Below the pieces are notes generated by a model. That model had not been told where the DNA came from, searched no databases, and worked only from the letters and a program-made list of their open reading frames with translations. A stretch of DNA of 63,817 nt, the filler included, from Lenisia limosa (taxonomy: Eukaryota; Protista; Breviatea): assembly GCA_001655205.1 (NCBI GenBank). It is 10 parts of 10 records of this genome, joined end to end, with 100 filler letters (N's around TTAATTAATTAA, not from the genome) between each part and the next. Parts side by side here need not be neighbours in the genome. Positions count along the whole stretch, not along the records: positions 26,449 to 37,092 come from LPNZ01007796.1; 9 more parts are not named here. The stretch is one strand, 5' to 3'. This document shows, one piece after another, positions 3,289 through 37,092 of the stretch. Each line of letters opens with the position of its first letter. The stretch's first letter is position 1. The position numbers and the translations under genes are program-made.

Positions 3289-3610
3289 TATTAACTAATT
3301 AATTCACCTTATCCGCCTAATCTGCTCTTAGAGAGTTGCTAAGATGGATTCTCAAAAACACTTTACACCAACACCGCTTCTTGACTAACTTCCACCTAGA
3401 TTTTTACAGGCTAAGCGTCATAAAGGGCTTAAAATTTGAAGATTGAAGCATTATAAGTGAAAATCGAGAAATAATCGATAATTATCGATATTTATTTGGG
3501 TTCAGAAGAGCATGTTTATGTTTTATGAGGGGTTGTTGAAGTATTGAGGACTAGAGAAAAGAAGAAGAGTTCGATAGCAGACTGTTTTTGTTTTACTTCT
3601 CAAATTTACC

Positions 3611-4764
3611 ATGGTATGCGTCTCTGTTTCCTTCTCAACTGCTGCTGTCTTTATATTTCAAAATAAAATGACTTAACTGAGTAGGGAACTCGTGTTGCAG
3701 CACAGATCATTGTGAGCATTGGCCAGATTATCAGCAAAGCAGTTGTTGAAGGCTACAAAGGAGCCCTTGCCAGTTTGCAGGGATTTGCACCTAACTCAAT
3801 GTCGGATGCAATATGGCATATTTTCCATTGTTTGGTGTTCCCTCATCTCATCTCCAGATGCCCAGACTGGTCTCAGAGCAGCTGGTCCTCGTATCAAGAT
3901 CTCTGTGAGCTTGGCAATATTTGGATTTTATGGAACCATATAATTGTTGTTCATTTGAACCTATATTTCCTGATATATTTTTCTAGGTTTTCTCAATGTC
4001 TTATCATTTTTAGGAAGCTGAAAAGATCTTGGGTGTTCGAGTTGCTGACTCTTTGAAAGACATTGAAGCGGTTGGCGGAGGACACAGTATGATATAAAAA
4101 AACAATGAGTCAGTGTTTAAGTCTGGGAGAGCATTTCTCGGGAACCCGTCATTGAGTTATATTAGAATGACAAAACTTGTATACTCTTTCTGCTTTAACA
4201 ATACTGACCATGCCTGTAGAAAGCTGTGTGTATTCTCTTTTAAATTGGTGCTGCAACCTTCCACTACTTTTGTTAAATTACATATCATAAACATATACTA
4301 TATCTATATATATGCACATTCATACAATTATAGTGTACTGTAACATTAATTACCCGCAGAAATACCTAAGAATGATGGACAACAATTCAGAAGAAAAAGG
4401 AGGGTCATTTTACTTACAGTCAAAAGTAAGAGGGTTGCGTGGACGCACACAAACAACCGAAATACGTTCAACCTTCCAGTTCCTCGCTGATTTTGCAGGA
4501 TTTATCTTCTATACTTGTGATTATTTTCTCTGCATGATGAAAACATACATTTTCTCATTGAATTTTCTGGTTTATGTGATATGTACTTAGTTTCTTGCAC
4601 CAGTACCAGTTGTTTCTATTCTTGCTTTCTACATATATATATTCTTGTCTCATTCAATGGGAAGACTGATATTCTAGATGTTCCGGGCATACGAAGTTTT
4701 TGAGCAAGAGCATGGCCAGAGTGGGCCTGTTGATGACTCTGAAGACCCGAAGCCCCAGGATTAA
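3611..4764 (+). CDS. PAM16: Mitochondrial import motor subunit Pam16/Tim16 (multi-exon)
   Basis: Spliced exons read M|GTRVAAQIIVSIGQIISKAVVEGY...EAEKILGV...KYLRMMDNNSEEKGGSFYLQSK|MFRAYEVF, including the diagnostic GGSFYLQSK motif. TAA at 4762-4764. Confidence 0.93.
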
Positions 4765-5005: not shown

Positions 5006-8000
5006 CTATTGCTCCGCAATGCTCATGGCAGGGTCCTTGGAGTCAGCTTCATTTATAATCTCGCCTGCTGCTGCGTCTGAAAAATTGATAAGGATACAAA
5101 TTACTGTAGGGTATTGCCTCAAGCATACCTTTCTCTGATTCTTCAAGTGTGCTACTGTTGTCCGAATTGGGCAGATCATCAAGATCGCGCATTAACGCCT
5201 CCCTTACGTTTGCTAATGAGTTAAAATGACATGTAAAAATTAATAAATTTCCAAAGAAAGCCAAGATAGTAATACATATCACATTGAACCGCTGTGCCTA
5301 GACACAAACAGGTAGAGATATTCAAGAGAAATTTCTGGATTGGCACCCTGCTTTACAGATATCTATACTTAACAATGTAGCAATATGTATAATATTATTA
5401 CTTGACGGAGTTATTAATTTCAATCTTCAAGACCTACCCGCTTCTTTGAGCTTGATCAGGTCGATTTTCCCATCATCCCCAGTGGGGATCATTTGGATAA
5501 TCTCACTGATCTAAACTGTCAGTTTAGGGCAGTTTCAATAGAGAAATGAGAAATGAAAGGAGTTTTTGGCCAAAGCAGTTGGCACCAGACACAAACAGCT
5601 TTTCCTGTGCCTCCCCATAGTGTGATTTCAGAGCATAGTCCGCATCCTACTTGTCCTTTTGATCTTTCCTCCTTCAACATTCGAATTGCTGTTCCAAGTT
5701 CCTCTGGAAGGGAAATAGGTAATAATGCGTTACTTGAGATTTCAACATTTTTGACCGAAAGGCCTAATAGGTACCGTTGCCTCTCTCACCAACAGTAACC
5801 TTTCCGTCCTGGTTGACATTGATCAGGTTAAGCCCTCGACTGATACTGCTGTCTATTTCTGTCATTTCTTCCCCGAGGCGCGTAAGTAGGAACTCAAGTC
5901 GTCTTGATAGCCTGGAATATAATAAAAAAAAAACTGTTTTTTTATGGGAAACGGAAAATATCAATACCGATGATGTGAATATTAGCGTTCAGATTGTGAT
6001 TATGGGGGNNNNNNNNNNNNNNNNNNNNNNNNNNNNNNNNNNNNNNNNNNNNNNNNNNNNNNNNNNNNNNNNNNNNNNNNNNNNNNNNNNNNNNNNNNNN
6101 NNNNNNNNNNNNNNNNNNNNNNNNNNNNNNNNNNNNNNNNNNNNNNNNNNNNNNNNNNNNNNNNNNNNNNNNNNNNNNNNNNNAAGAGAAAAACTACCCT
6201 CGCTGTGCAGTATTTTAACATATTTTAGCTGGAAAACAAAACTAAGATGACTCTCACCATGCTGCTTGGTGTCCTGGCTACTGTTGGGGGATACATCAGA
6301 AAAGTGTATTTCTTCCACTTCGATGGGCTGAAGATAAAGATAAACCACATAGGTCAGAAGAAGAATAGGGGGGGGGGGGGATCCTTGGCCGGAAATACCG
6401 ANNNNNNNNNNNNNNNNNNNNNNNNNNNNNNNNNNNNNNNNNNNNNNNNNNNNNNNNNNNNNNNNNNNNNNNNNNNNNNNNNTTAAATTTAAAGTACGAT
6501 ATGTACTGTAATATTGATTATAAAATAAATCTTACCAAGGAAACCTCTTCCACAGAAGGCGCAATGATAGAATCAACAGTTCCTGGTAGGGCTGGATCGT
6601 GAGTAACATTGAGATTCAAGGGAAAACATATGACAAAAGCCTCCCCATCATGGTTGGCTTCATGAAATATCGCTGTTCCAGCCGAGCTCTTCTTTGACAA
6701 TTTGAACAGACCTCCATATACATGTTAATCCCCATATGGTCCCTCCACCCATACATGGACTCGATTTTGTCTGTTTCTTGAGTCGCTCAGTTGAGTCCTT
6801 CACAATTTCATTGGCCCTCTCGTACTCCAAACGAAGGTTCGCCAAATCTGCGCGTTCCTAGAGGGGATGAATCCAAGCATCAACAATTATATTGAATACT
6901 CATTAAAGATTCGACAACTAATTAAGAAGAACACATACCCTCTCCCATTCATACCTCATCCACAGCGCTTTCTGATGCCAGGATCAAGACTGCCTCCTCT
7001 GCCTCAGCCAGGTCTTTTGCCTTGATCCGCTCAGATTCGGAGGGTTTAGGCTGCTCATCAGCTGAGGGTATTTTTACTAGAGAATCAGAACATGCATGTG
7101 GTAATTCGTAAATCCAACTGAATAATCCAATAAGACATTCGGAAAATAATTCAAGTCATTGGCGGTAAGATAGACTTACATTCATTCTCTGTACTTGTAA
7201 TGGAAGGAACAGTGAAGTTAACATATGTGTCCTAAAAGTGTAAAAAGGGAGCCAAACGCATATCGCACATTTGCAAGGTTCAGACCTTGTGTAGATCAGT
7301 GAGGTATTTGTCCTGTGCTTCTTGCTCAATAAGCTGGGTCTGATTGAGTACAGATGTCAGCATTCGCTCCGAAGTTGCTGAATTTCACAATAAGAATAGA
7401 AAATAAGACTGATGCCGAATTTGTCACTGAAATGACAGTAATTGTAACTAAAACAAATACTTAACACGATTGTGTGAATCAACCAGTTATATTTTCCATA
7501 TTATATGATATATTCTAAAAGTAGACTTCAAATAGATGGATTTAGGAGAGAATGCGCAAAGAAAGCACCCCACCAACAAATAGAATTCTTGTAGGTAGTT
7601 TTGACCTGGTTTTTGGCTACTTCAGCCTCAACTTCTTCAATAACTTCACGCGACATTCCACTTAATGTTACACGCAGCGCCTCCTCCTGGTTGTTGGTGT
7701 AGATGCTGGGGGGGAGGGGTAATTTATATGAATACAAATTCTACACCATTTAATTAACAAAAGACAGCGGAAATAAACAATACTATATGATATCATATAA
7801 TATACTACCAATATGGAAAACCATTATTCAAAGAATCTCACACTGTTGTTACCTGCTAAACGTAAAAATTCTGGAGAGCAGTAGTAATGAGATGGAGACA
7901 CCTGCTTGGCTCAGGTCCAACCACTCAAGGAGTTGCCGTCTGAGCACGGCCCGTCCTAGGTTTGAGAAGGTATTTTCACGAGCCGCATATCCCCCAAAAA

Positions 8001-10641
8001 GGTCCCTTCAGCACTAACCTCGTTGTGATTCGAAGTTCATTCCTCTTGCCCTATTAGCAGCTTGAAGCTCACTAAAGGAAACGAGTCAACTCCCTCGAAA
8101 ATTATCATCTAGAGAAGTGTAAAAATGACTCATGATGCAGCTGCAGTAAATAACCAACGCGATCAATTATTATCATACCCCCCATTCCTCCCCAACCCTA
8201 TCATCCGCCTTGATACGTCTGACTTTGTGACGTAGCTGGAACCGCAAAAACGCGTCAGTTCCATAGGNNNNNNNNNNNNNNNNNNNNNNNNNNNNNNNNN
8301 NNNNNNNNNNNNNNNNNNNNNNNNNNNNNNNNNNNNNNNNNNNNNNNNNNNNNNNNNNNNNNNNNNNNNNNNNNNNNNNNNNNNNNNNNNNNNNNNNNNN
8401 NNNGATTTCATCTCTATATATGTAATTGTTTTTAGATCGTGGCAAAAGTCTCACTACAGAGAATTATTAACAACTTTTCACCCAGTCTCAAGACTATATA
8501 TCCTCACCTGAATAATTGTGACAGAGACAAAATTTCATCGGTCGTAACAGCTTCTCCATTTTGAGTCTGTTTCATTAGCAATGGATAAAGAAACTGAAAG
8601 GGCACTATGTACCCCAACAACCTTCACTATTCAAAGAAGCTTTAAGATAAGAACAACCATCTCCTCACATTATATCATATAAAAGTAAATAGATATGAGA
8701 AATAAAACAAGATTTTCTGGCCGAAGCCGTCTACACCATCACATTGTCAGAGATATAGGATTATATTAATAGTATTAATGCACCCAATCATTTGCCTACA
8801 ACTTTGTGCACACAGTTTTCTGTGTGCCTCCATAGCAATGAGAAATAAAAAACCAAAGTTGTATCTAAAGATATAATACATATACATTGTACATAAATAT
8901 ATATGATACATATCATTGCATATAATATGCATATTATACATATCATATAGTATATGATATGTATTGTTATACTTTAGATATATCCGATATGCATATACTA
9001 GTACATAATATAGGCGCACAGAGTTGTTAGGCAAATGATTGGGTGAAATAATATTAACTATAATCCACTATCTCTTATTAAAGTGATGGTGTGTTTCGGC
9101 CAGATACAACCTTGATATATTTATCGATCACATATTATATCATGCTCACCTTACGCATGAGTGCTTTGAATGAGTCTGCATCCGGGACTTTTCTGTTGAC
9201 CAGTTGCGACGCAAGGTCATTGAAAGCGTCCTAAGCTATGAGAGATGCAGTTTGGAGAAACATATGTATATTCTTCACAGACATTAAGAAAGCGTGCCAT
9301 TTCGATTTTGACTCGGAGGGACCTTTTAAGATCTGCTTCTTTCTTGAGTTGGTCCACAAAAACAGATGGTAGCATTTGGGGGAACATCTAAGGGATGAGT
9401 GAATGAGCAAAAACACACAACTAGCAACTGACCTAGTAACATATCAAAGGTGTACAAAGGGGTGTTATGCCGAGTGAAATAATGTACTACTCATTAAAAC
9501 ATTGAAGAGTAATAACGATCCGAGCTAACCTTGAGGGCGAAAGGCAAAGCAAATTCGAGAAAAGGAACCACGACAAACACTGCAACCGGTACAACACGAA
9601 AGATGTCACTGGTCTGGGGTCAGTTAGACGCCGGTGGAAACAGTCTAGGAGACTTCATGTAATTAAGCCCACCCCCATACCACTCGGTGGAGAAGTTTAT
9701 GCTCCCTTCTTGTCAGTGTTTGCCCTAGGAATTTGATATTTTTCGGTTGAAAATCTCATTGTTATTCAACTCTTTAACAAATACTAACCTTTGATCATGC
9801 GACGAAACAGCTTGAAGGCAATTTTCGTATCAGCGCAGAGGAGTTTCATACCTGTCACAGTATGAACCGTGACGTCCTTGATCTTCGAGAGGGTCTACAA
9901 GATAAGTAGGATGGTTTTATCTTCCATCTGAAGGATTTGAATCAAAAAACCGAAAACAAGACTAACCTTTCTGAGAGGCTTGGAATCATTGATTTCTGGG
10001 TTGTTACCAAAATATCATTCAGGCAAGAAATGATTCTGATATTTACAAAAATCAATTGTCATAAAAGGGATATGCCAAACGAAAAACCAACAATTGTGCT
10101 CCCCACTATTCAGCAACGCATCAGTTAAATAAGGCGGAAGGACTTCTACCACTGGTACAGTACTTTCTGTTGCAGCAGCACTTTCTTCAGGCTGGGGGGA
10201 TTCTTTGTCATCCTCAGCATCTTGAAATAATTAAACGGCTGAGAATAATTTGTGTTGAAAATTGCCCTTTGAAGCTAAGAAACATAACAAAACGGCTAGC
10301 TGTGATCCCCTCTCCTCACCAGTTCCAGAAAAGTATGAAAGTCTGAAATGTCTCCCCAGAAGCGAAGCCCGAACTGTTTGCTACAGGTATTGAAATTAAA
10401 TTAATTGTTTTTATCCAATGAATATTTTGGAAACATAACATCAATTTTTCAAACCCATCCCACCGAGGCAACATTTGTTCTCAATGCAGAAAAAGCCAAG
10501 CCTCTAGCAATTTTGGGTGAACTGAAAATATGAATTGAAGACAAAATCAGAATTGCCAATGGACTCCTTTCAAATCAATTCCCTCCAAAACACCCACGAT
10601 TTCAGGAGTCCTTGAGTGGCTGGAAGGAAGAATCTTAGCAT
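5006..10641 (-). CDS. LETM1: LETM1/Mdm38 mitochondrial inner-membrane protein (about 20 exons)
   Basis: Exons read GMKLLCADTKIAFKLFRRM, SDIFRVVPVAVFVVVPFLEFALP, MFPQMLPSVF...SLRVKIEMARFL, YGTDAFLRFQLRHKVRRIKADDR, ELQAANRARGM, LRRQLLEWLDLS...SLLLLSR, plus EF-hand-like NVNQDGKVTV and GDDGKIDL. Probable presequence MLRFFLPATQGLLK; start and stop inferred. Confidence 0.92.
8695..9113. repeat. ~150-bp TA-associated interspersed repeat (family A), here two inverted arms around an AT-rich spacer in a LETM1 intron
   Basis: Arm 8695-8831 (atgagaaataaaa...ggccgaagccgtctacaccatcac...cccaatcatttgcctacaac..tgtgcacacag..gcctcc) is the reverse complement of arm 9013-9113. Related copies near 24884, 35920, 37695, 38133, 39298, 48877, 57683. 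Confidence 0.8.
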
Positions 10642-13139: not shown

Positions 13140-16100
13140 CCCTCACGTGGCTTTGGCAGTCCGTTTGGAAGGTACCTGTTAATTATTAAAATACNNNNNN
13201 NNNNNNNNNNNNNNNNNNNNNNNNNNNNNNNNNNNNNNNNNNNNNNNNNNNNNNNNNNNNNNNNNNNNNNNNNNNNNNNNNNNNNNNNNNNNNNNNNNNN
13301 NNNNNNNNNNNNNNNNNNNNNNNNNNNNNNNNNNNNNNNNNNNNNNNNNNNNNNNNNNNNNNNNNNNNNNNNNNATACCTGAAGAGAGGGGTCACAATGG
13401 GGTAAACAGTACAGAATATTGTATTTGTTGTGTTAGTATCACTGAGAAATGGCGTACTTGGTCCTTCCCATGCCCCTTCTGATGACGATGACTGTGTTGC
13501 TTGGTATGGCGTTTGACTGGATCCATATAGCCTGACTGTAGGGGAAAAAGGGGTAAATAATATGAAAATTTCAACTAAATATGATTGGGGTTTCCAAACG
13601 ACTGGGGTAAAATGGCAATAAAAGTTGAAAGTTCGGTTGTAGAAAACAGTTGAAAGTTAAATTATCAATGGCATTCCAACCTTTTCAGAAGCTTCAGGGT
13701 CAGCTCTAACCATTTGGTCAGCAAGGCCCAGAGCCATGCGAATTCGAGCATCCACATCCGAAGACGATGTCTGAAGAAGAGGATTAACTCACATGAGAAT
13801 AATATGAATGAACAAGAACAATGAAATATAAAGCAGTTGGAGGATCGAATAGGTCATCCCTGTACCTTTGTCTTTGGAGTTGCTTTGCTTTGTCCGTCAT
13901 GGGACATGGTGGTGTAAGATACTTGGTGATCCGGAGAGGGCCTCGGTCGAGCCTACAGTATATCAAATTGGTTATTCTAAAAATGAGAAAAGATATCGGA
14001 TTTTGATTAATCAAAAAGGGTCCTAAATCCAGAACTGAAAGTGAGATGAATGACCACAAAAAATGTTCATGTTGTCACCTCTAAGTTTCTCGGAGTGTTG
14101 TAGGCAGAACCAGGCCGACTATGTGGTGGTGACTGGCTTGTTTTACCAGGGCCTAAAGCAATGAAGTGAAGTTGACTATTATTACTAACCAAAACGGAAG
14201 GGAAGATGAGCATATAAACAAACAAAAATAAAGCTTACGCTCGCCAATTGGGGGGTTCAATAGAGCGTCAGCATAAGGAGGCCGTAGCATTGGGGGGCTG
14301 ACTGAGCGTTTTGGGGAACCTGGTGGGGGTGACTATCCAATATCAAATATATATGTGATATTATCATTTTTCCAACCCCCAACACTATTGTTTTCGCTTA
14401 TTTTCTTTGACATTGTCAATTTGCTGCTTCTGTATTTCTCTACTGTCCCCAAAAATTGAAAACATCAATAAACTACATTACATAGATAGAAATGAGAAAT
14501 AAAATTAGGTTGTATCTGTCCAGCAAAGGATTATTTTACTGATTAAAGTAAGAAATACCTACACTTGAAAATCATGACATATATCCTGCTCCAGACCCCA
14601 TGATCCAATACCCCTCATGGCATGTATCTTATTGTTCGGTAGCTGGTGGAAAAATCTTCAAAAAATAGAAATTTTAACTGTCTTTTTTCTTTTGAAATGA
14701 ATAGGAAAAAACCCACCACTTCGTGACGTTGTCTTTTTGATGTTCATTGGCCTGGAGTAGACCTAAGGGAATATAAACGCTTGATAAATGAAACAGTAGT
14801 TTAATATGGGGTAAGTAAAATAGTATTTGTGACGACTATAACAAATAACAATGTGAATGTGCACCCACCTTTTGCGGAAAGTTATGGACGGGGTGATGTC
14901 TACAGATTTGTGAAGGCGAAAGGAGAGAAGAAAATAAATATAAAAGCCACAATAAAAACAGGTTGCGCCAGGTAATACCTTGGACCAGGAAGGGGCATTT
15001 CATCATCCAGGGCAGCAGCAACCAGCTCAGCTGTTGTGAGTTGGGAAAGGTCTCGATGTGGTACTGATTGCTCCGGTGGAGACTGTGACAGTGAGAACTA
15101 CTAATTCTCTGGACTACACAAAGAGCATTTATCAGAAGATGATGTTGCTGTAAGACCCCCCTCATTATGACTAACACTTAGCTAAAATCCAGCCTACATC
15201 GTATCTCTGAGTTGGAAGAGGCGGCCTCGCGGATTTTGTTTCCTGGGACTGGGTTATCAGTTGCAGGGTAGTTTATATGCTTTGTAAGCTTCAATACGTG
15301 AGAAACGAAAATTGTTAGGTATTGGCAATTTCAAAACTATAAACGCTCGCCTCCGCCCTTGCCATTATTTTTAGGATTGTTAGAACTTGAGCCACATTTT
15401 GAAATTTCGCCCTACAATCTGACTAATTTCGCGGGTTGCTGCTTCAGCAACCACCAAGTTCTCTTTGACACTCTACAAAATAAGTTGATCATTTTGTCCA
15501 ATATTATTTTGGGTACAGGAAAGAGCTGCAATTTCACTTCTTGAGCCAAGAATGTGAATAACCGAAACATCAACTCACAAGCATTATTGCCCCCCCCCCN
15601 NNNNNNNNNNNNNNNNNNNNNNNNNNNNNNNNNNNNNNNNNNNNNNNNNNNNNNNNNNNNNNNNNNNNNNNNNNAATGCAAGGCGTAATCGGTAGGATTC
15701 TTCCAAACTTGCGGGATCGCGCGGGAGTGGCTGTGATAGGAAATCAACACAATCCGAACTCAGTGTTCCGTGAATCAAGTGATGAATCGAGAAGAGTAGT
15801 GAGTGTAAAAACAATAGAAAAAGCCCCCCCTCCCCCCAAATACCCTGGGTTCCTGTGGAAGAGTTGGGGTTTGCGTATAGCGGTAAGGCTCAGGCGGTTT
15901 CACGACAGGCTCGGGACTGGTGGCGGTTTGGGTTGAGTTGGTTTGTGGGATGGGGTCAGTTCCTGGGGGGTGGAGGTGAGAAAAAATTGGGATGTGTACA
16001 AGTGAAGATATTGACCCTCCTCACCTCGAGACTTCATGATTTTTTCCGGAGGGGATGGCACTTCAATATCGTAGGAAATCGTAGTGCGAGGTGGGGGTGT

Positions 16101-23915: not shown

Positions 23916-26062
23916 CTAGTTGGGAACTATATAGTTGGGAAAAGGAAGCACTATGTTGAAGTAAAGGCAACCCCCCTCACCGTCCTTGTCTCCCTTGCAC
24001 TCCTTGATGATTGCCCTACCGCCAACATCCTCATCGAGGATATTGCAGGCGAATAGAACATTCTTGCCGTCAACTGTGAAGCAATGAGAGATGTTGTGCA
24101 AATTTGAACAGTAAGGAGTACTTTTTGCTGTCAGCTGCATAATGAATTATTAATTCATAATAGTAGGAGGATTCACAGATACCTCAGTGAGATTCCCATC
24201 GATTGTTGCCCTAGTGGCCCCACTCCCCACGGTTCCAGTTGTAGGTCATAAGACGCCAGTCCCCATTTATGTCGATTCTTTCCCATTCGCCATTGCGGGT
24301 CACTGGGGGGGTAAATTCTAAAATTGAAAATGAAAGAATATAATCTAGCGAGATTGATGGGGGTGGGTGAGGTTCAACACGATGACGCCTTATAACTTAG
24401 GCTTCACTTTGGTTCGAAAAAGACCAGGTAAAATATTGATAGTTTTCGAGGATTTATCAAAAAAACAGTCCTTTTTGAACCAACCCAACAACCAACCTCC
24501 TTCGCCGAAGGGAAACACCTTAGTAAAGACTGACTCGTAAGCCATCTTCAGTCCAACGTTGGTTTCAGGCTTGTAGATGCGGCGAAGATGGACGTCAAGA
24601 CGAGAGGTCTGTCCCTCCAGCTGCCCATGATTGATGAATCTGGGAGGGAAGTTATGGGGTTGAAGATAATTGATGATTCCAGCGGTTGTTTCAATTTGAG
24701 GCAAGAAAATATTGTATATTTGTGCCACACTTCAGTACGAAAATAGTCAAATGGGTTGACAAAGGGTGTGAGGCCGAAAAATTGCCAATCACCATCTCTT
24801 GTAGCCCTCACCTGATTCCGGGGAGGCCATACACCAGAACGGCCGCAGCAAATGACTGTTCAGCGGAGCCAAACTAAAGCATAACCGCACCATCACGCTT
24901 ATAAGAGATATTGGATTATAGTATAATACTAACTCATCCATCATTTGCCTTACAACTCTGTGCACACAGTGATATACATGTATATTGGATAATATGGCTG
25001 ACCTTTTCTCCTTAATTAGACATGAAAACTTGCATAAAAGGTGTCAATCAGAAAAAAAGGGACGATTTGTATTTTAGGTAATTATTACGAGTTTCATCAT
25101 GCCTTCGGAAAAAGACTGAATTTCTCAATTAATCCTCGAAAACTGTCGATATTTTACCGGCCTTTTTCGAACCGAAGTGAAGCTCAATGCCAAACCNNNN
25201 NNNNNNNNNNNNNNNNNNNNNNNNNNNNNNNNNNNNNNNNNNNNNNNNNNNNNNNNNNNNNNNNNNNNNNNNNNNNNNNNNNNNNNNNNNNNNNNNNNNN
25301 NNNNNNNNNNNNNNNNNNNNNNNNNNNNNGCGGTGTTACCCAGGTAGCCCTTGTTCCAATTGTCTGTCCACCCTGAGATACCACCAATATCCTGGGCGGC
25401 TAAAGAGTCAACAAAATATATTATATTGATGCTTCAACCCAAAAATAAACCAATATGATAAAGCATAGTCACAGACCCCCCCACCAATTTTGTCATAAAT
25501 GTCCTTGTCATACGTGTAGTCAAATCCGAGAGAGTGAAGCTTAGCCTGATATATTATAACCGCTTCGCTACAATGTATAACTATGCCCGAAATACGATCA
25601 ATCTTGTAAGAAGATGGAAACAATAACATTTTCCATCTAAAGACAAACCATACGTTTGTATTCCAGTAGCACTCAGCCATGAAGAACATATCGGGGAACT
25701 GCGAGCGCACTGTTGTGAGCGCAGTAGTCCAGAACTCTGGGGAGGGAGGTAAATGCCCAGTGGATTATACGTTGCACCGAAGAGCGAATCCTTTCTTATG
25801 TGATAATAAAAAATAGTCTCACCTGTTTGGGGTCTGTTGTAACCACGAGTTTTGACAATGTCACCCCAGGTGCTTTCGAAAATGTCGTTCAACAAGAGCA
25901 TTGACTGAAAGCATAAACCATACTCGTGTTCTCTATTTCGAAGGTTACGATATCATATGAAAGTTGACCGTGTTTGTATTGCTTTAGAGGGGGGGGGGGA
26001 TGTGTACATTGTTACCACCATACCATATCGCAGCGAATGCCGTCAGCAGCAGCCGCAACCTA
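23916..26062 (-). CDS. GH13 alpha-amylase-like protein (AmyAc_1-like; 5' part lost at scaffold linker)
   Basis: Exons read ADGIRCDM|.MLLLNDIFESTWG (nucleophile Asp), EFWTTALTTVRSQFPDMFFMAECYW (acid/base Glu), LGFDYTYDKDIYDKI, AAAVLVYGLPGIR|FINHGQLEGQTSRLDVHL. Confidence 0.85.
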
Positions 26063-26448
26063 CAAAGTAAAATAGGTACAATCTTCATGGAATATTCAAG
26101 GGGGAAATCACTGTAAACAGTGTCTAAATTGAAGAGCACTGTCGAATCAAAAGACTATATTGAATAAAAAGCAACCCTATCCGTAAAATGATGGTGTTTC
26201 AATGTATTCAACATTTGTTGATTTCATCTCAAAAAAACATGCATAATTATAAACTGACACAGCCAGCACTACACTGCAGCTCATGATTTGTTTATGGTAT
26301 ATTATATGTACAGATATGTATTTATGTGTTGTGTTTCCCTAGATTTCTNNNNNNNNNNNNNNNNNNNNNNNNNNNNNNNNNNNNNNNNNNNNTTAATTAA
26401 TTAANNNNNNNNNNNNNNNNNNNNNNNNNNNNNNNNNNNNNNNNNNNN

Positions 26449-29395
26449 CCTACCGAGAGTGGAGTTCTGGATGTGAACCATGTCGAACTTGCCGAACATG
26501 CGGGAGAATGCAAAGCCGGTAATGACACTGAATGGTTAATTCAAAAGATGACAGACACCAAGATCAAAAAATCAGTCGGCTTGGAATCCTAATGTACAGA
26601 GTTGATTTTGGACTTGCGTTTTGTATTTTATACCCCCCCCCCCCNNNNNNNNNNNNNNNNNNNNNNNNNNNNNNNNNNNNNNNNNNNNNNNNNNNNNNNN
26701 NNNNNNNNNNNNNNNNNNNNNNNNNNNNNNNNNNNNNNNNNNNNNNNNNNNNNNNNNNNTACCTGGGGAGGGGGGTGAGGAAAATACTATTTTTATTTTA
26801 CGTAGGGCTTCACTTCGGTTCGAAAAAAGAATGAATAAATCCTCAAAAACTATCGATATTTTCTGGTATTTTCCGAACCAAAATGCACTATTTATACAAC
26901 ACCTTGAAAGATACTACATAGAAAACCATGACCCNNNNNNNNNNNNNNNNNNNNNNNNNNNNNNNNNNNNNNNNNNNNNNNNNNNNNNNNNNNNNNNNNN
27001 NNNNNNNNNNNNNNNNNNNNNNNNNNNNNNNNNNNNNNNNNNNNNNNNNNNNNNNNTTCTTGCTTTTAAAAAGTCCCCACCGATCATTGCGAAGAGGTCG
27101 GAAACGTAGTTGGAGCCGTTGAGGTCACCGTAAGCTGAAAGATGTTAAAGCGGTTATTTACATATTAGTCCAGAAAAATGTCAGCAAACTGCGTGGGGTA
27201 AGCAAAGGTGATATTTAGGGTTCCTACGGTCCCAAAAAGACTGAATCTCTTGATGATAGACATGGATATTTTAAGGGTTTTTTCGGGCCGTAGGGAAGCC
27301 CCGTTTAAATGGCTTCAGCCAGGTACAACCTTTTTATGTTCTTCTTCTATTATATATACTACATATATACACTGAACGGGATAAGTCTTGACCGAATTGC
27401 TTTTTGATTTTCCACCCCGTCACTATGGGGTTGGGGGTTGGTAAGAATGAAAAAATTTAATAGACAGTATAGAGGTGGGGGGGGGGGGANNNNNNNNNNN
27501 NNNNNNNNNNNNNNNNNNNNNNNNNNNNNNNNNNNNNNNNNNNNNNNNNNNNNNNNNNNNNNNNNNNNNNNNNNNNNNNNNNNNNNNNNNNNNNNNNNNN
27601 NNNNNNNNNNNNNNNNNNNNNNNNNNNNNNNNNNNNNNNNNNNNNNCGCAGTTTGCTTACCCCTCCTCAAGCAGTTTGTTTACCCCTCCCCCCACGCAGT
27701 TTGCCGTCCTTCTTGCGGTGAGCCAGAATGACGGAGGCAGCCAGGCCGAAGTATGCACCGAATGTGTGGACCGCAAGGGAGCCACCAACATCAACCATCT
27801 GATCGGTCACTCACGACAGAACAATAAGGACAGAACAATAAGGACAGAAAATTAAAATATTTAAATGATCATTCATGACAGAGAAATATAACCTGTGGAA
27901 CGGTAATCCAAGAATAATACTAGGCTAAGTGACACTCTGGTATATTGACGATATGAATCCAGCAAACCTCGAGTTCGTAGGTGGTAATGTAGAAGTTGAA
28001 AGCGTAGCAAGGCATTTCAAGGACGCCAAGAATGAGGAGCTGAGGGGCGTAAAACGAAGAAAATTTATGAAACAAAAAAAGCCCTGTTGGTATCGCTATA
28101 TTTTTGGTTTCCTTGATATATTGAATTTGGATTATTCTTGTTCGCAAAAACACTATCCATTGCCCTTACGAACCTGAGAAAGAGAGACCTTGCCAAGGAG
28201 AGCACCGAAGGTGACTGCAATATGAGATAAATCAGAATGTCTCTCCCCATAATAAATAAAAGGACTTCGTGTAATCATAATGTTGAAACTAAGTGACAAA
28301 AATTTGAACCATGATAATAGGTCTCACTTCACATTTTGCAGTTATTTGTTCACAAAACACGGAGCCTTGAATAATAGAGTATCAAAGCCATCCATTCCCC
28401 NNNNNNNNNNNNNNNNNNNNNNNNNNNNNNNNNNNNNNNNNNNNNNNNNNNNNNNNNNNNNNNNNNNNNNNNNNNNNNNNNNNNNNNNNNNNNNNNNNNN
28501 NNNNNNNNNNNNNCGGTCCGAAAAATAAATTTTAAATATCGATTCTATCGAGGATTTTTCGAAAAATTCATTCTTTTGTAGTGCTCTAATTATACCCCCC
28601 CTTACTCATGCCAACGGCGGCGGCGAAAAGACCCTCAATTAGGTAGACAATGGAGAGGGGAATCTTGACCCAGTGGTCGTTGTGGTAGTTGTGTACGGCT
28701 CCCATGCAGAGCATTCCGACCTGAAACGTTATTCGCATGGTCAAAGCGTGAAAGAAAAAAAGACCCATAACATAATGAAGATTTAAAGCTACCCCCCCCC
28801 CCTACAAGGATAAAGATGACGGNNNNNNNNNNNNNNNNNNNNNNNNNNNNNNNNNNNNNNNNNNNNNNNNNNNNNNNNNNNNNNNNNNNNNNNNNNNNNN
28901 NNNNNNNNNNNNNNNNNNNNNNNNAGGTAGCCGAAACTACCCAGGTGGTGAGTCACACTCAGGAAAAATATCCGATTGTGATCAGATGTGAAATTGTGAA
29001 AACTTCAGCTCCGATCCAAAAGAAAGAAAAGTCAACAAGCCTCCACCAACCCAATGAAAATCATGACCGCGACGTCAGAGAAGAGACTGTAACGAGTGTT
29101 TTGGGTACCGACGGTGGCTGTAAAGTCATTACGGTCCCGATACTCCTCTAACCAACCATCAGTCACAGATTCATAGTCAGTGAAGAGCTGGAAGGCAACA
29201 ACAAGAGCGACGTAGAACGCCATGAAAAGAGGCATGAAGATATCCTGTCAAATGAGAATTTAGAGCACTAAGCATCGATAAAGTCCGAGTTAATGTCTGT
29301 AAACTCGATATATAAATTGAGGAACAAACCATGGTCTTCTTGGCGGTGGAAGGCTTGACCTCCTTCGTAAGCTCAACAGTTGCAGAGTCAGACAT
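26449..29395 (-). CDS. Rh-family ammonium transporter (3' end lost at linker)
   Basis: Exons read YSLFSDVAVMIFIG..GSFGYL, TFGALLGK, PQLLILG, DVGGSLAVHTFGAYFGLAAS, SDLFAMIG, GKFDMVHIQNST. These are hallmark Rh motifs, including both conserved His residues. Confidence 0.93.
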
Positions 29396-29689
29396 TGTTA
29401 AAAAGGGATCGTTCTTGAAAAATCTTTTCGTAAAAAAGGAATAAAGAATATTCTAGAAAAACCCGGGTACTGACGCACCTGCTCCCGGGTTTCCAGTGTT
29501 TTTGGTAGCCCATCTACCTGACCCAGCCTGACCAAGCAAAGGCCTTGCATCTTCAAATCTAACGTGTAATGTGATATAATGATTACTCTGTCAACCACCA
29601 TCAATGTTTTCACAGCGATTTTCCACTTCTGACCCATTATTTCTGCGACATAGGATTCAAATCTGGTGAATCTGTCATATTCTGACAAA

Positions 29690-31950
29690 CTATGCACATA
29701 GGGAGCTCGTTGGCAGCCATAGTTGCCAGCGCAGTGAACAATGAAAATGAAGTTCAGATCAGGTTTGATGTCGTGATTGTTGTTTTGTTTCATTCTCAAG
29801 ATGTTTGGCTCAAAACGCGGCAAGATGGTTCTATCAAGTCAGCTTGTCAAGGTTTTTATCCGAGGCTGATGATATGCTCGGAGCGATCCTTGACTCCAAC
29901 ATTGCAGCCTTTGTCAAAGAGCAAACGTATTAGGGCTCAAGCCTGATGTATTAGTGCGAACAGTATTTATCTCGACGCGCACTGGATGGCAGAGAACGGC
30001 GTCACAGCGATCTCCCAATTCAACTTCTTTTTCTCTGGTATCTTGATGACCTCATGCTTTAGATTGAAATGGGACACGCCTGAGAAAGGCTGGGTGGACC
30101 TCCTATCGCACATCACGAGGCTTGACATTATGACTTGCCAATGGTTTGTTCGATGCATAGTTGGAAGACAAATGATGGTTGCATTAATATTCTACTTTTA
30201 TTGAATAATATGTCTGATTAGCAAGATGGTGTGAATGGCTTCGGCCAGATAAAACATTGTTTTATTCTCATTCTCTAAATAATTAACCGCGAGTGTTTTC
30301 TGTTGTGACCGCGATAGGGCTGACATTGTGTCATTGGGAGAGGAGTATCGCATGAGCGGCTTTGCATTGTTCAATGACGAAACTGCTGGGGTAGGAACGG
30401 AACTGTCGAGTGGTGCTGCAGAAGCGACTGGCCTGGGCTTCGTTTGTTTTGTTTTGATCAACCCTTGTGTGTTTTCAGCCAAGAGTTGATTTTGGGCTTT
30501 ATTTTTTGTTGCATAAATTTTCCATTCCCCCCTCCCCCACAGCCAAGCGGTTCTTATTTGCAGCAAATCCAATATATTGGTGTATTGGAGGATAGCTGGG
30601 GTATGAACGGTTCTCATTTCAATTATTTGACCATTTTCACACTATTTCCACGCAGTAATGGCTTGGTGTTTCTCAATTTATTTTCCACCTAACAAAGATA
30701 CATTCTCGCATAGAAAATATCTTTAATTGCTACTTTAACAGTTCCTTTTAATTTGCATTTTCAAAACTTTATTGTCTTTTTTCATTCACTANNNNNNNNN
30801 NNNNNNNNNNNNNNNNNNNNNNNNNNNNNNNNNNNNNNNNNNNNNNNNNNNNNNNNNNNNNNNNNNNNNNNNNNNNNNNNNNNNNNNNNNNNNNNNNNNN
30901 NNNNNNNNNNNNNNNNNNNNNNNTTCACATTCTCGCAAACCCTCACCAAACTCCTGACAAGAGCCCTCGTGATGCTCATTCGTTATCGACCGTCTCCCCT
31001 CATTGAAGAGTGTGCTTGTTACAGGAAGTACATTCTATAAATGCAAAACAATACATAGAGATTAGGGCTTCACTTCGGTTAGGAAAATACCGACAAAATA
31101 TTGATAGTTTTCCAGGATTTATCGGGAAATTCCGTCTTTTTTCGAACCGAAGTGAAGTCCTAATAGGGATGTCATAAAACAAAATCTCACTATACGCATG
31201 CGTCACTCATTGCACTTAATACACAATGGCTTACAATTAACTATAATCTGTTTGCGTGAATACGTCATAGAAAATCCTTGGATGCAAACGGTTTCAAAAG
31301 CCGTGTGTAATACCGATATTTATCAAGTCAGTCTGTTTTGGAAAGCTTACCACTGACTCGACAGGTGTGTGAATAAGATCTACCGAATAAAGCAGTACAA
31401 CGCTAAATGGACCAAAGACCCAACTGAGATCTACCAGGTAGGAAAGGAAGGGGATTGGGTAGGAAAGGAAGGGGATTGTTTTTGAACTTTCTGCAATTTT
31501 GTTTTGTTTTTGGAATTAATTGCTTTTTTTTTGGAAAAAAAGTGTCTAAAATTTTTCTGAACAATGGAACCCCCTTGAAATTTTAAAATTAATCTCAAAA
31601 TTAATTACGCGGAGTCCTGGATAATTCGATGAATAATAATTCAATCTTTTCGATTTTTATTCATGGACAGAATTTTTGATCATTTTATTCCACTGGTTAT
31701 TAATTTTCTGCAACTGATTACTTGTTGTTCAAAACATTGATTATGTTGAAAACTTGTGATCATCTCTCACTATTTAGGTAAGCGGAGTGTTGAAGTGTAA
31801 GAGATGGATTGTTTTTTTCTCCTATTGAAAATATCACTTCCTTTCTTATTCGACTATGATAGTGTAAGGATATTGAGGTCAGTATTTTGAAAGCCAGGAT
31901 TGCAGTGTCAGGAGGACAACCATGTTGGACGATTGTGAATAGGGTTAGAA
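29690..31950 (+). CDS. Hypothetical multi-exon gene
   Basis: Several AG/GT-bounded exons (SIYLDAHWMAENGVTAISQF, KWDTPEKGWVDLLSHI, IYRIKQYNAKWTKDPTEIYQ). No family recognised. Confidence 0.4.
31063..31162. mobile_element. 100-bp hAT-type MITE (family C)
   Basis: Terminal inverted repeats TAGGGCTTCACTTCGGTT.../...AACCGAAGTGAAGTCCTA flanked by an 8-bp near-duplication atagagat/atagggat. Confidence 0.85.
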
Positions 31951-31989
31951 CCCATAACACCTACCCAAAAAATCCACACAAAATCAAGG

Positions 31990-34296
31990 AAAGCACATAG
32001 TATATCTATTTGATAAATGATCAGACTTCCTAAGCATCCTAATGGACTTCCATCCTCAACGTTTCATCTTCTCCTCCTCTGTACAAGTCATATTGGTCGT
32101 GATGGTGTGGCGGAAAGAATGGACGGTGAAAAGGAGGGCTTTTTCCTCAGACAGACCAGTTTTGACCAAGTCAGACCGGAGAATGTCATACATTGCTCGA
32201 ACTCTCAGCAGGCTACAGGATGGCCAAACGAACAAGGCACGATCCACGTTCTTGTCGTTGTTGCGTGACTGTTCGTTGAGGGCTAATTGCGGCCACTGGG
32301 CAAATGGTCTTTGAGGCCGTTGGTCGGTACATCAAAGAGGCTCATCTTGGCTTGTGACCCGGCGGGGAGGGTCCAGGGTGACTATCCCAGTTCATTGAGG
32401 GTTCCTCAGGAGGTCAGCCCACGAATCTAGGGCGGTTCTAGCGTGATGGGACACGTTTTGAAGTGCAGGGGAGTGTGGGAAAAGGCTAATCTCATTGTGA
32501 AGTGCCTTTGTCAAACGACGGCCAACTGGGGTATCCCGACCAGCCTAGGCCAATTTGTTCGAAAGGGACTGGAGGGACTTGATAGACTGGGGAGCATGGG
32601 TGGCAATGTTAATGTGATGGAGATATGCGGCAATCTTGTCCTTGGGGAGACGAGCGGTCATAGTCGGGTGTCAATTTCTCCCCCAGAACCGTCATATTAT
32701 GAGTTGAAAAGGACACCTTGTCCTCTCCGTAGGGGATGCCGACAAGGGTCCAGAAAATGAGAACTGACGCGAGGATGTAGCGACCAAAAGATGCAGTTTC
32801 GGCTGTGCCAAAAACGTCGTCAAAGTAAATTGAAATATACCATTTCTCTTCTGAAATCATAGAATCCAGGTTCTTATTGAGATAGTGAATTTGACCATGG
32901 AGGAGTTTATCAGGGATGGGTATTGACGAATTACACCCTCTTTGACCCCCTCTTGTTGATTTCAAGAGTGGCGCGGGATATAGCGTCAAAGAGGACAGGG
33001 CAGTTTTGGAACCCAAATGGGAGGTAATTGTACCGATAATGCTTCTCATCTGGCAAATTACAGCAGAGCCAATCTTGACTTGTTGGGCGGACAGGAAGTA
33101 GGTTGAAGGCACTCATCATATCAGCAGAAAATAAGAAATGATCGGGCCGTAAGAAATCTTTAAGGCCAGTGACTCGATCCAGCAAAAAGGGGCGCTTGAG
33201 AGTGTCGTTAGTGAAACGAGAGCCGTCAAGGATTTGGTCTTGTTCAAATGAGGGATTTCTTTGACGACAACTCCAACGGGATTGTAGTTGGCGTACGTTG
33301 GGGGAATCAATAACTCAGTAACAGTACCCGCAACAACAAGTTCTTTGTATGTGTCAGAGAGAACCTTAGAATTCTCTTGTGCCTTTGGCCAGTTTCGGAC
33401 GTGGAATTTGGTAGATGCGGAATCTTTCATACCAATGTCGGCACCTTTCCATAAAATAGCCGACACGATCCTCAAACCCAACCTTTCTCATCTCCTCGTC
33501 CATATAACAGGGTTGATCTTGTGGTGAGGAGAGGGGCAGGATTCAGCTGGCGGCTCCAAGTAATGCAGCCTCCTCGGGGTCGGCAGGGTTGGTGCGGAAG
33601 TGGTGGTATGTATCGTAGTCCGCCATAGAGACGTAGAGGGAACGGTCCTTTGTCGCACGAGACCCTATATAGGGTTGGATCCTTTATTCACTTAGTTTCT
33701 ATAATATACTCTGTATCAGTCTTCAGTTGATCATAATTTAGCATCTCGCATAGTCATTAAAAAACAGATTGTTAATCACTTGATAACTCAGAATCAATGC
33801 ATTTATCCAGACTTAGGGTGGATTACACCCTGTCCAAGGTTCTTCTTGGAACAAGCTTTTACCGAATGCCCAGGCTTTTTACAATGAAAACAGACTGCCT
33901 CTGCCGTTTGGCCTGGGGCAGCCACCGTCTGCGTTATACGTCGCACAAATGGGACTGTATGAGTTAGAGATGAAAATCGCACGGGACAAACGTAGCAATG
34001 ACATGAAGGCATAAAAACACATCGAATCAAAACAAGTTCTTACCGGAGTGGCGAGGGATCTTCTGGAACCTTCNNNNNNNNNNGGCCTGAGGAAGAGCCT
34101 CATCGTCAGAGTCGGCGAGTTCTGAAACGGAGTCTTCTTCTTGAGATACTTCTTCTTCTTGAGCGACCTCGTTGACCTCCTTGGTACGCTTAGCGACCTT
34201 CTTCTTGGCCTTGGGAGTCTTATTCTTGGCCTTTTCTTCTTGAGGATGAGGGGGGGAGGGGGGTGCAGCACGCATATTTCTTCCCCATTTGTGCAC
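31990..34296 (-). mobile_element. Decayed DIRS/Ngaro-like tyrosine-recombinase retrotransposon (gag-RT-truncated YR)
   Basis: Gag with CCHC knuckle CFHCKKPGHSVKAC; RT motifs NPVGVVVK, FSADMMSAF, YNYLPFGFQNCP, YFDD, LGEIDT..MTARLP; YR C-terminus ICPVAA, LFVWP, HSFRH..GWKS. Contains in-frame stops and frameshifts. Confidence 0.9.
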
Positions 34297-34499
34297 AAGT
34301 AGCTCAAAAAAATTTCAAAAGAGAAATTGTTATTCAATTTTTTTGTTAAATCTCAGATGAACTGAAACAGTCTCTTAACTTTTTATGAGATTAAAATTGA
34401 TTATGTAATATGTTGCTGCTAGCATTGTTTACACCTCTTTACCTGAAATAAAACTATCATTAAACACACTGCTGCATTTAAGATTATTTTAGGCTCAAA

Positions 34500-37092
34500 C
34501 TTTTATCTACGAAGCCCTTGCTGCGAACAGCGAGTCCCCCTCCCGCGAACACTTTGACTGGAGAAACAAACAGGCGGTAGGCAGGAGACGGTTGTGAATT
34601 GTTATGCTATTATATCTTCGTTTAATACATTTTCCATTTTTACTCCCTTCACCCTTTTGTTGTTCTCAACCTTTGTGTGTTGTCAGCCAACATAATTGAT
34701 TTTGGGTTTTTTCTGTTTCATACAGTTTCCCTTTTTAATAATCGATACGAATGATTCATATTATATGCATATCATGTACTACTTTGATATTATGCATATT
34801 TTATACTATATATGGGATCTTTGGATTTTAATTGACCACCCAGGTCGGGTCGAACCGAGCCGTGCCGCCGCCGATGCGATCACACTCCTTCCAACACCCG
34901 GCACGCACCTCTTCTGGCCGACGGCGTTCTCTGCCCAGTGGCGAGTCCTTGAATAGCAGCGGTAGGGAGGGGGAAAGAAGAAGGGATGTCAATCAACCCT
35001 TATCCACTAGTGATATGATCAAATGACCGACTTTCGAGGCAAAATAATGAACGAAGATAACACGAGGGTTCATCCCGAGTGTATCAGAGTATCATTGAGA
35101 CTTGTCGGTCAATTATATCATACGAGTGGATATGAGGTACCATATCACTGCGTGGAAAATGATAGTTCACAAGCGTGAAAATGATCCAAAAGGTGATATG
35201 ATTATTCATTTGTAGGGGCAAGTCCTTGCTCCCACAACTAGGGCTTCACTTCGGTTCTAAAAAGACTGGCAAAAAAATCGATAGTTTTCGAGGATTTGTC
35301 GATAAATTCAGTCTTTTTCAAAACCTAAGTGAAGCCCTAGGTACAACCCATAAAACTATACCTCTGTTCAATTCTCCTGACCCCTCTCCCCACACACCAC
35401 CACCACAATTTGACCCCCCAGACTATCAATTTGGGTTATTTTTGTTTCATAAATTTTCCAATTTAACCCCCCTCCCCCAGACTATCCCGAAAACCACCTT
35501 GTTGCCTCTATACGACCCTCGGCTCTCACTGCTCTCCCCGGCCTTGGTGGACATTATCTCGAGCTGTCGTACCCGCGTTATTGCAAATGGAATGCTGTAG
35601 GCGGCGTGGTATATGGCTTCCCGACGTTCCCAAAACAAGACTGATTTTTCCGAATTTTTTTATATCTAATACATTTAAAATATATGTAAATATGTACATG
35701 GGGATACCATAGTATTGTTATTATCTCCATGTTATCGCAAATGAAATGCTGTAGGTCAGGGTGTCATTGGCTTCACTTCGGTCCAAAAAAGACCGGTAAA
35801 ATATCGATAGATTTCAAGAGATTCAGACTTTTTTTGAACCGAAGTGTAACTCTTGTCATTCATGTCAAATATTGGAAGGGCATACTTATTAATACTGGGG
35901 TTATCCTTGGTATGTATCAGGCCGAAGCCGCCCACACCATCACGCTTATAAGAGATATTGGATTTTTTGCCTGATTAATAATTATATTACATACCGTGAC
36001 CAGGATAAGTCATGACCTATATTCCTTGGGAATTCAGATAGGAAATCGGTCAAGACTTCTCCCAGTCACTGTACACACATCACATGTGTTTATAACCCAA
36101 TAGCCCGGTCAACATCTTCAGCTATTGTCAGTCACAAACTGCCTCATCGAATAATTGATTATTACATAATTATTATACTTAGGGCTTCATTTCGGTTTGA
36201 AAAAACGCATGAAAATATCGATATTTTTCGATGATTTATTATCGAGAAATTCAGTCTTTTTTGGGACAGTAGGGAAACCCTTTTAATAATACATGTATTT
36301 ATAACCCTTTTAAAGCCCTATCATCCTTTCGATTATTTTACATTCATAAGATATATGATGTATACAGTGTATACAATATACTGTATATTTTAGTAACGTT
36401 GTAGTCTGGGCTACATCTTCAGATGTCCGTCACAAACTGGAGCCTCATTCACCTTGATGCTGTGTATGTTGGGCCCTGATGCTGTGTATGGGGTGTTAGT
36501 GGGGATCTGGAGGTAGCAATCTAGTCGTTTATAATATTTTCGAAATCGAGTCACATGACTTGGATTTTTAATACACTAACACCAGTCGTTTCTTTCTTAT
36601 TGTACTCTACTTTTTTTATGTTTTAGCAATGGAGTCAGTAACTGCGCCTGGTCACACGACTTCAATCATTTTTACATTATTTGGGTATGTTGTGATTTAA
36701 TCATTTTTACATTCTTTGGATATGTTGTTCTGATCCCTTACAACACAACTATAATTCCATTTTTGCTCAACCATTTTTGCTGAACTCACACAATCCCTCA
36801 TGGTATTATTCCAAAACGTAACCACATTCCATAACCTATTAGTACTAGAGCTTCACTTTCGGTTCAGAAACAGCTGTAAAATATCGATATTTTTCGAGGA
36901 TTTATCGAGAATTCAGTCTTTTTTTGAACCGAAAGTGCAGCTCTAATCAGTACACCCCTCCACATTCCATAACCCAAGCAGTACTCCATAGCAAAGCAAT
37001 CTGTCCGAGTCCTCTCTCGCGATGACGTGGCGCTCAAATGCCCTTCCATCGGCGCGCATTCAGTCGTGTCGGAGCTGATGAATGAAGTGCGC
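34500..37092 (-). CDS. Hypothetical multi-exon gene with MITE-laden introns
   Basis: GC-rich AG/GT-bounded segments near 36960-37090, 35490-35640, 34830-34960, 34510-34560. No motif recognised. Confidence 0.3.
35239..35339. mobile_element. hAT-type MITE family C copy
   Basis: TAGGGCTTCACTTCGGTT...GTGAAGCCCTA; flanks cccacaac/ggtacaac (5/8 match). Confidence 0.8.
35994..36071. mobile_element. 78-bp Tc1/mariner-type MITE family B copy
   Basis: TA|CCGTGACCAGGATAAGTC...GACTTCTCCCAGTCACTG|TA. Confidence 0.8.
36846..36945. mobile_element. hAT-type MITE family C copy
   Basis: TAGAGCTTCACTTTCGGTT...AACCGAAAGTGCAGCTCTA with 8-bp flanks attagtac/atcagtac. Confidence 0.85.

Follow-up and report, generated by a model that had tools for sequence, protein, structure and literature searches.

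To our knowledge, the use of splicing to obtain both gag and pol products has so far been demonstrated for only a few long terminal repeat (LTR) elements, that is, Ogre, copia, BARE1 and EVADE, and the expression of Pol relative to Gag is poorly understood in retroelements that carry a tyrosine recombinase (YR). In this work, we describe the relic of a YR retroelement in a stretch of 63,817 nucleotides (nt) of DNA from the breviate Lenisia limosa (assembly GCA_001655205.1), which joins ten parts of ten records and is hereafter called the window; positions given without a contig name count along it. The relic has the order gag, reverse transcriptase (RT), RNase H (RH) and YR, and lies on the minus strand from about 34490 to 31897, in the part taken from LPNZ01007796.1 (26449–37092). 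Comparison with two related copies, on the metagenome contigs L001 and L002, points to a probable intron in the gag gene of this family, directly past its zinc knuckle, whose retention or removal might have decided between Gag and Pol.

Splicing is the step that controls the gag and pol products of Ogre, copia, BARE1 and EVADE (PMC3735527, PMC12786077). In Ogre, a Ty3/gypsy element of legumes, an intron between the gag-pro open reading frame (ORF) and the RT/RH/integrase ORF is spliced from part of the transcripts (as cited in PMC3735527 and PMC12786077). The family studied here would resemble Ogre in that genomic copies keep a spliceosomal intron, splicing joins the structural ORF to that of the polymerase and only the upstream product is made from unspliced RNA. 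Nevertheless, Ogre belongs to the LTR elements and has an integrase, whereas the present family has a YR; the present intron lies inside gag, directly past the zinc knuckle; and splicing was demonstrated experimentally for Ogre, whereas in the present family it is predicted from sequence. In the Ty1/copia elements copia, BARE1 and EVADE, the Gag:Pol ratio depends on splicing and not on ribosomal frameshifting (PMC3735527, PMC12786077), as it would here, but their spliced RNA gives Gag only, whereas here it is the unspliced RNA that would give Gag.

Among YR retroelements, Ngaro and VIPER have gag, RT-RH and YR without a methyltransferase (PMC8547959, PMC3266345), the same arrangement that we found in L001. 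Unlike them, the present family has a very divergent RT; a repeat search of L001 and L002 gave no split direct repeats of the kind that marks Ngaro termini. DIRS1-like elements are likewise YR retroelements with a gag-like ORF and a Ty3/gypsy-related RT, but in them the YR follows gag and precedes RT-RH-methyltransferase, the ORFs overlap over long stretches, and both inverted terminal repeats and internal complementary regions are present (PMC3266345); the family studied here showed none of these features. Penelope-like elements also have genomic copies that carry spliceosomal introns (PMC3846280), yet their RT belongs to an unrelated class and they have no gag/pol switch. In the literature searched we found no description of native introns in Ngaro, VIPER or other YR retroelements, although they may be described elsewhere, and an overview of DIRS1-like elements makes no mention of them (PMC3266345).

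The RT core of the window copy was run by HMMER against 1.84 billion representative proteins. Only 50 matches were obtained at E<=1e-3, two of which are members of the same family (P0001, with 69% identity, and P0029); the next-best matches were gypsy-type RTs with 27–30% identity. The contigs bearing P0001 and P0029, that is, L001 and L002, come from one ENA metagenome assembly. L001 has 72–77% nucleotide identity to the window, and L002 about 41% amino-acid identity. Both contigs share the short interspersed repeats of the window but not its flanks, and L001 and L002 are therefore separate insertions, either in this organism or in a close one. When P0001 and the RT N-terminus were used in word-index searches, the sole addition was P0051 on L003, a 245-nt fragment that begins downstream of the gag/RT junction and is uninformative there.

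In the window copy, a minus-strand ORF (34030–33803) holds a CX2CX4HX4C knuckle at 33892–33851 and ends in ..NLGQGVIHPKSG (..KKNLGQGVIHPKSG), with a TAA at 33805–33803. As the initial annotation of this locus had noted, unspliced Gag thus ends within an AT-rich insert. The insert has a GC content of 0.32 in the window, against 0.52 and 0.56–0.58 in its flanks, and five to eight stops per frame; across the copies the values are 0.30–0.41 against 0.45–0.56, again with stops in all frames. An in-frame TAA occurs at the homologous ..TGG(A)TAAA.. site in all three copies, which also have the 5' part of the insert (..TGG(A)TAAA.TGCAT..) in common, whereas the interior of the L002 insert is unalignable with the other two except near its ends.

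Splice sites were compared by alignment of the three copies together with the raw sequence (a slash marks the exon–intron boundary). The knuckle lies in gag exon 2 (33829–33954, minus strand), which closes with a complete CAG codon (Q) and a G that is the first base of a codon split by the intron. The donor position at 33828 is kept in all copies and always in phase 1, reading CAGG/GT in the window and L001 and CAGG/GC in L002, while the acceptor YAYAG/GG is kept in the window (TATATAG/GG) and L002 (ACACAG/GG). The interval between them, which we call intron B (33665–33828, minus strand; G/GTGTAA...TATATAG/GG), is 164 nt long in the window but 116 nt in L002; each of these values is 2 mod 3, and each connects the knuckle frame to the downstream frame at homologous points. 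Intron-like GT..AG (or GC..AG) ends are therefore found at a conserved position and phase, and their removal restores the frame between two constrained blocks across an unconstrained interior. From the knuckle to the coding block that follows, fifteen GT/AG combinations are possible; the 164-nt pairing has comparative support.

Immediately past the acceptor, window and L002 share the sequence (S/P)R.T.DRS(L/F)YVSMADYD.Y in the phase-1 frame, which is frame 2 of the window. Over the first 19 codons of this frame, 14 are identical, and 11 synonymous against eight nonsynonymous differences give a ratio of nonsynonymous to synonymous differences per site (pN/pS) of 0.21. The other two frames give 0.91 (frame 0, with seven of 20 residues identical) and 2.61. 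The constraint starts at the AG itself, 5' of any ATG, and both copies have in-frame stops shortly ahead of the AG, at a distance of a few codons; twelve conserved codons, with five synonymous codon changes among them, precede the first ATG of the downstream frame. Based on the donor, the acceptor, the constraint on exon 3 and the lengths, a real intron at 33828–33665 is favoured over a plain spacer, and likewise over the 162-nt interval of the initial annotation, which is discussed below. Moreover, the interruption falls at the same codon and phase in copies with as little as 41% amino-acid identity, which share its 5' part, so that it predates the split between subfamilies that went on transposing. 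The AT-rich insert is thus probably the remnant of a real, ancestral intron of spliceosomal type, and an intron conserved after the knuckle throughout the family seems likely.

Exon 3 and the junction ORF (33465–33664, minus strand) had to be followed segment by segment across frames. In the window, (G)SRATKDRSLYVSMADYDTY.. is read in frame 2 and is followed by WSRQLNPAPLLT (frame 1), YKINPV (frame 0) and, once more in frame 2, MDEEMRKVGFEDR; the path from ..EEAALL through WSRQLNPAPLLT and YKINPV to MDEEMRKVGFEDR meets no family-level stop. The frame changes come from deletions private to the window copy. One is of 1 nt at 33558/9, where two sister contigs from run X1, a DNA-like run, have the extra base (depth 163 of 180), as does L002; frame 2 ends just after it, at a TGA (33545–33543). 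Another removed 4 nt at 33522/3, which are kept in one sister contig, L001 and L002, and the third removed 1 nt near 33505, kept in L001 and L002. As the three sum to 6 nt, the acceptor block and MDEEMRKVGFEDR are both in frame 2 and the stretch between them runs through frames 1 and 0. We had considered the stop at 33545 as the Gag stop of the family, within a classic gag/pol overlap, and dropped this reading because the sister-contig insertions and L002 reveal a private 1-nt deletion.

The corresponding path in L002 runs from ..EELWGRQLAP through a private 1-nt loss, LLTYYKINPMIMDQ, a private TAA and MEKSNFEERDIASAILWKGVDLG in one frame; this copy also reads MEKSNFEERDIASAILWKG in one frame, continuous with the RT N-terminus. 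In L001 the path shows APILTTYKINPVMMDDEMSKIKF. Between L001 and L002, the path frame LT.YKINP..MD..M.K..F has a pN/pS of 0.30, against 1.42 and 1.08 in the other frames. Intron-like anatomy, conservation of position and phase, constraint on both sides and a path towards the RT can thus all be read in the aligned copies.

From these features we infer that splicing occurred, and that it was partial and regulatory. Since every genomic copy has intron B, the RNA that was reverse-transcribed would have been unspliced; genomic, transposition-competent RNA would have to retain the intron. On such RNA, ribosomes would halt at the TAA 8–10 codons inside the intron, giving a short Gag that ends just past the CCHC knuckle. 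Splicing would link ..NLGQ-G to (S/P)R.T.DRS(L/F)YVSMADYD, and the spliced frame would run stop-free via LW(S/G)RQL..AP.LT.YKINP..MD..M.K..FE.R to the RT N-terminus (SAILWKG..). In elements of the L002 type this path would be directly in frame with the RT; in those of the window/L001 type a further +1 event would be needed, unless that lineage was already defective and mobilised in trans. The spliced fraction would then set the Gag:Gag-Pol ratio. A phase-1 intron at 33828–33665, whose retention would give Gag and whose removal would give Gag-Pol, is our best explanation, and we put the chance that it is right at about one in two; the role of intron B as a gate from gag to pol is evenly balanced. 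The broader proposal that a Ngaro-like family sets its Gag/Gag-Pol ratio by retaining or removing an intron after the knuckle, as a convergent counterpart of Ogre, is tentative and falls slightly short of an even chance.

The initial annotation had proposed a splice-controlled switch in a different form, with a 162-nt intron (33826–33665) that takes the knuckle straight into the RT. The sequences on which it relied are all present: the donor GGT/GTAATC (GT at 33826–33825, minus strand), the acceptor TATATAG/ ending at 33665 and, after removal of the 162 nt, the reading GLVRQRT...INPVIWTRR, a TGA (33490–33488) and then ERLGLRIVSAILWKGADIG, which is the RT frame; frame 0 of the window is indeed open from 33664 to 33491. 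This pairing is one of the 15 possible and has no comparative support. Its donor is not conserved, being TT in L001 (GGT/TTAATC), and frame 0 lacks the constraint seen in frame 2. The continuity of frame 0 into the RT is a product of the three deletions private to this copy, at 33558, 33522/3 and about 33505. The donor at 33828 (G/GTGTAA) does yield GSRATKDRSLYVSMADYD...GAAS and then the TGA at 33545–33543, as stated, but what had been labelled a short alternative tail is the constrained frame (pN/pS 0.21, against 0.91 in the frame preferred there). Nor is the TGA at 33488–33490 (minus strand) a decayed sense codon. It is an out-of-frame reading of GAG-ATG-AG(A), the codons around it read E-M-(R/S) in the frame conserved in all three copies as MD..M.K..F, and L001 has a TGA at the homologous place (5616–5618), so it is a by-product of the other frame. 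We therefore rejected the 162-nt model as very improbable. What survives of the earlier idea is control of Gag versus Gag-Pol by an intron, which is plausible for the family given a conserved interruption and a path to Pol; its donor, its frame and its meaning of the TGA do not stand. The ends of the insert are conserved among copies as regards the donor site at 33828 and the acceptor (in the window and L002), but not the donor at 33826.

Several observations weigh against a switch based on the 164-nt intron. The family comparison rests on three copies, all decayed, and no intact copy was found in the 1.84 billion representative proteins or in JGI metagenomes. In the only RNA run (X2) no RNA contig covers the element, which is weak evidence because the run is small. 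The donor of L002 is GC instead of GT, and L001 has lost the acceptor and the start of exon 3 in a deletion of about 159 nt (equivalent to window 33696–33538) that reaches about 127 nt past the acceptor. The frame path requires three private indels in the window, and up to two private 1-nt indels (one near 3258) and two private stops in L002. In addition, window and L001 are 8 nt shorter between FE.R and SAILWKG, which places the RT in +1, so that a Gag-Pol fusion in this subfamily would take more than splicing. The last point would suit a real intron whose splicing merely extends Gag, giving two isoforms, with Pol expressed by +1 frameshifting or by initiation at MD..M. The exon-3 and RT frames overlap by about 118 nt in the window and 50 nt in L001, an ATG (MD..M) is conserved 5' of the RT, and in Ngaro and VIPER the ORFs are normally separate (PMC3266345). 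Inspection of the overlap by eye, not by a formal scan, revealed no canonical slippery heptamer. Nevertheless, constraint continues 5' of that ATG (LT.YKINP), the L002 segment is in frame with the RT and, even with frameshifting, the overlap would be reachable from gag only after removal of the intron, which leaves a mere extension of Gag unlikely, at roughly one chance in five. Somewhat less probable is a non-coding spacer without splicing, the second ORF being reached by internal initiation or reinitiation and the GT..AG being fortuitous. No RNA supports splicing, L002 has GC at the donor position, and an AT-rich spacer contains GT and AG by chance, as the 15 combinations illustrate; but the twelve conserved codons with five synonymous changes start exactly at the AG, in-frame stops lie just 5' of it in both copies, and two different lengths restore the frame at homologous points. 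We find it more doubtful still that the insert is an artefact of decay, for instance a small insertion or rearrangement acquired late by a long-dead lineage and without function in any active element. All copies are dead and rich in indels, and one sister contig is structurally different (33681 joined to 34035), yet the interruption falls at the same codon and phase in copies down to 41% amino-acid identity and all three have ..TGG(A)TAAA.TGCAT.. in common.

The remaining domains place the element in a rare family of YR retroelements, as judged from its sequence. The RT relic (32395–33469, minus strand; IVSAILWKGADIG.., LPFGFQNCPVLFD and YFDD) has several stops and changes from frame 0 to 2 near 33240, from 2 to 0 near 32900 and from 0 to 1 near 32670, with the motifs IVSAILWKG.., LPFGFQNCP and YFDD readable. 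A C-terminal YR fragment (32059–32331, minus strand; ..HSFRH..) was recognized by its Phage_integrase match and this motif, and L001 has both HSFRH and the downstream Tyr at 7750–8148. RNase H motifs are readable in L001 and L002. All Pfam matches lie under the Pfam cut-offs: zf-CCHC in the window gag ORF (E=0.0017), RVT_1 in the window (0.0017) and L001 (0.0032), and Phage_integrase in L001 (7.6e-4) and the window (0.049). In a protein atlas, pieces of the element fall with RT clusters and with eukaryotic Phage_integrase clusters. As in the DIRS order, the RT is related to that of Ty3/gypsy and the recombinase is a YR rather than a DDE integrase; no integrase or protease ORF was seen.

The order gag-RT-RH-YR was established from the ORF map of L001 and by tblastx against L002. 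In L001 the RNase H ends near 7137 and the YR starts near 7232, so a methyltransferase does not fit between them. The element had initially been discussed among DIRS-type elements, but a DIRS1-type assignment does not fit, since gag, RT-RH and YR without a methyltransferase is the Ngaro order, and the methyltransferase and the gag, YR, pol order of DIRS1-like elements are not found. A repeat search of L001 and L002 returned just weak inverted pairs of 27–28 nt with low complementarity, unlike DIRS1-like termini, and no split direct repeats of the Ngaro kind (A1 ... B1 A2 B2). The sole direct repeat flanking L001 (3602–3655 and 8947–9000) is part of an interspersed repeat of very high copy number, which occurs at scattered sites in the window as well. 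On this basis the architecture fits a Ngaro/VIPER-like rather than a DIRS1-like element.

Further searches added little to the family. A homologue search with the gag knuckle ORF gave no matches, and in the JGI metagenomes neither a protein-alignment scan nor the degenerate pattern FGFQNCPVLFD gave any. The public gene call P0001 (L001 5607–6551) reads two TGA codons as Trp. We rejected this reading for the TGA in FQV-TGA-NWP of L001, whose counterpart is CGA in the window and CAA in L002 and which represents ordinary decay, and for the second TGA (5616–5618), which stands at an out-of-frame position and is concealed in P0001 by the Trp call. The Trp reading looks like a choice of code by the metagenome gene caller and not like a variant nuclear code.

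Upstream of exon 2, L001 homology begins at 34490 and soon reaches a leader motif of 29 nt, CTTAAATGCAGnAGTGTGTTTAATGATAG (34454–34482, minus strand), located by alignment at about 3713–3741 in L001 and 1610–1640 in L002. It hardly varies among the three copies, although elsewhere these are just 41–77% alike, and is a candidate cis element of the family, with a role in promotion, packaging or priming. The relic of gag exon 1 (34044–34296, minus strand) is basic and then acidic, ends in ..RFQKIPRHS plus a G, and aligns with L001 3911–4130 and L002 1830–2085; its start codon region is damaged in the window copy, and a gap of 10 N (34074–34083) conceals part of it. Between exons 1 and 2 lies a candidate intron or spacer, here called intron A (33955–34043, minus strand; GTAAGA...ATACAG), with 89 nt in the window against approximately 1,165 nt (L001) and 800 nt (L002) in the other copies. 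The interiors have no similarity, while the donor is kept (G/GTAAGA in the window and L001, GTGAGT in L002). This donor is in phase 1, yet the constrained frame of exon 2 requires phase 2, a mismatch for which a lost exon or further indels are possible explanations. The 5' part of exon 2 (PIC..YN.D.G) is in a frame different from that of the knuckle in the window and L001, and in the same frame in L002.

Run X1 includes this locus together with several sister copies that have diverged from it, in low copy number. One sister copy, at about three to four times single-copy depth, joins 33681 to 34035 and thereby lacks or replaces the entire knuckle exon and most of both intron-like intervals.

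The window copy itself is a dead, non-functional relic, antisense within an intron of a host gene. It has many frameshifts, several stops, private deletions and an internal loss of about 1.1 kb, comprising the RNase H and the YR N-terminus (L001 6689–7877). The host intron (31438–34492, plus strand; GTAGGA...TTTTAG; 3,055 nt), defined by junctions of a polyA RNA contig, encloses the entire relic. A polyA RNA contig of 1,810 nt matches 31365–31435, 34491–34575 and 34843–34961 with no mismatches, and its loose ends were placed at 30980–31009 and 35481–35510. Once ambiguous bases are shifted by one or two, all host junctions are GT..AG on the plus strand. The exon adjoining the 5' end of the relic thus spans 34493–34576, and the remaining exons lie at ..31009, 31365–31437, 34844–34961 and 35481 to about 35640, all on the plus strand; a single frame is open through the five exons. 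The plus-strand host gene is expressed and spliced. Being dead and antisense in a host intron, the window copy could not run any gag/pol switch. It is expected to do nothing functional at this locus, and its present role may be that of intron filler only.

The host 3' splice site (TTATTTTAG/G; 34484–34511) corresponds, on the opposite strand, to the A-rich sequence with which the relic begins at its 5' end. L001 homology ends 2 nt short of the host exon, and a weak similarity (about 12 of 19 bases) may extend some 20 nt inside it; the relic may have supplied the host acceptor or part of the host exon. The piece is a gapped short-read scaffold, with seven runs of N at 26645–30923 and 34074–34083, six of them of 102–157 nt and one of 10 nt.

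Two interspersed repeats surround the relic. One, of about 100 bp, occurs at 26803–26885, 31063–31164, 35237–35339, 35770–35853, 36161–36281 and 36826–36947, that is, in at least six copies within 10.6 kb, and at L001 1519–1612; its summed contig depth in X1 is about 26,000–28,000. Over the region Rfam gave just one sub-threshold MIR319-like hairpin, on a copy of this repeat (26 bits, where the gathering score is 54). The repeat itself is probably an element of the type of miniature inverted-repeat transposable elements or short interspersed elements. The other repeat, with an X1 depth of about 64,600, occurs at 34655–34737, 30412–30538 and 35429–35478, and in L001 at 749–829, 3602–3655, 8864–9000 and 13318–13366. 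In the window as well as in L001, the retroelement stands between copies of this repeat that share one orientation, probably by coincidence and not as element termini, since host exons intervene in the window.

The locus carries a lesson for annotation, in that a neat splice that restores the frame in a single dead copy can stem from that copy's own deletions; the true frame of the family emerged only through comparison with other copies. If our reading is true, a native, position-conserved gag/pol intron would provide a splice-based way for some YR retroelements to express pol, and the family would be one more group of retroelements obliged to package unspliced RNA.

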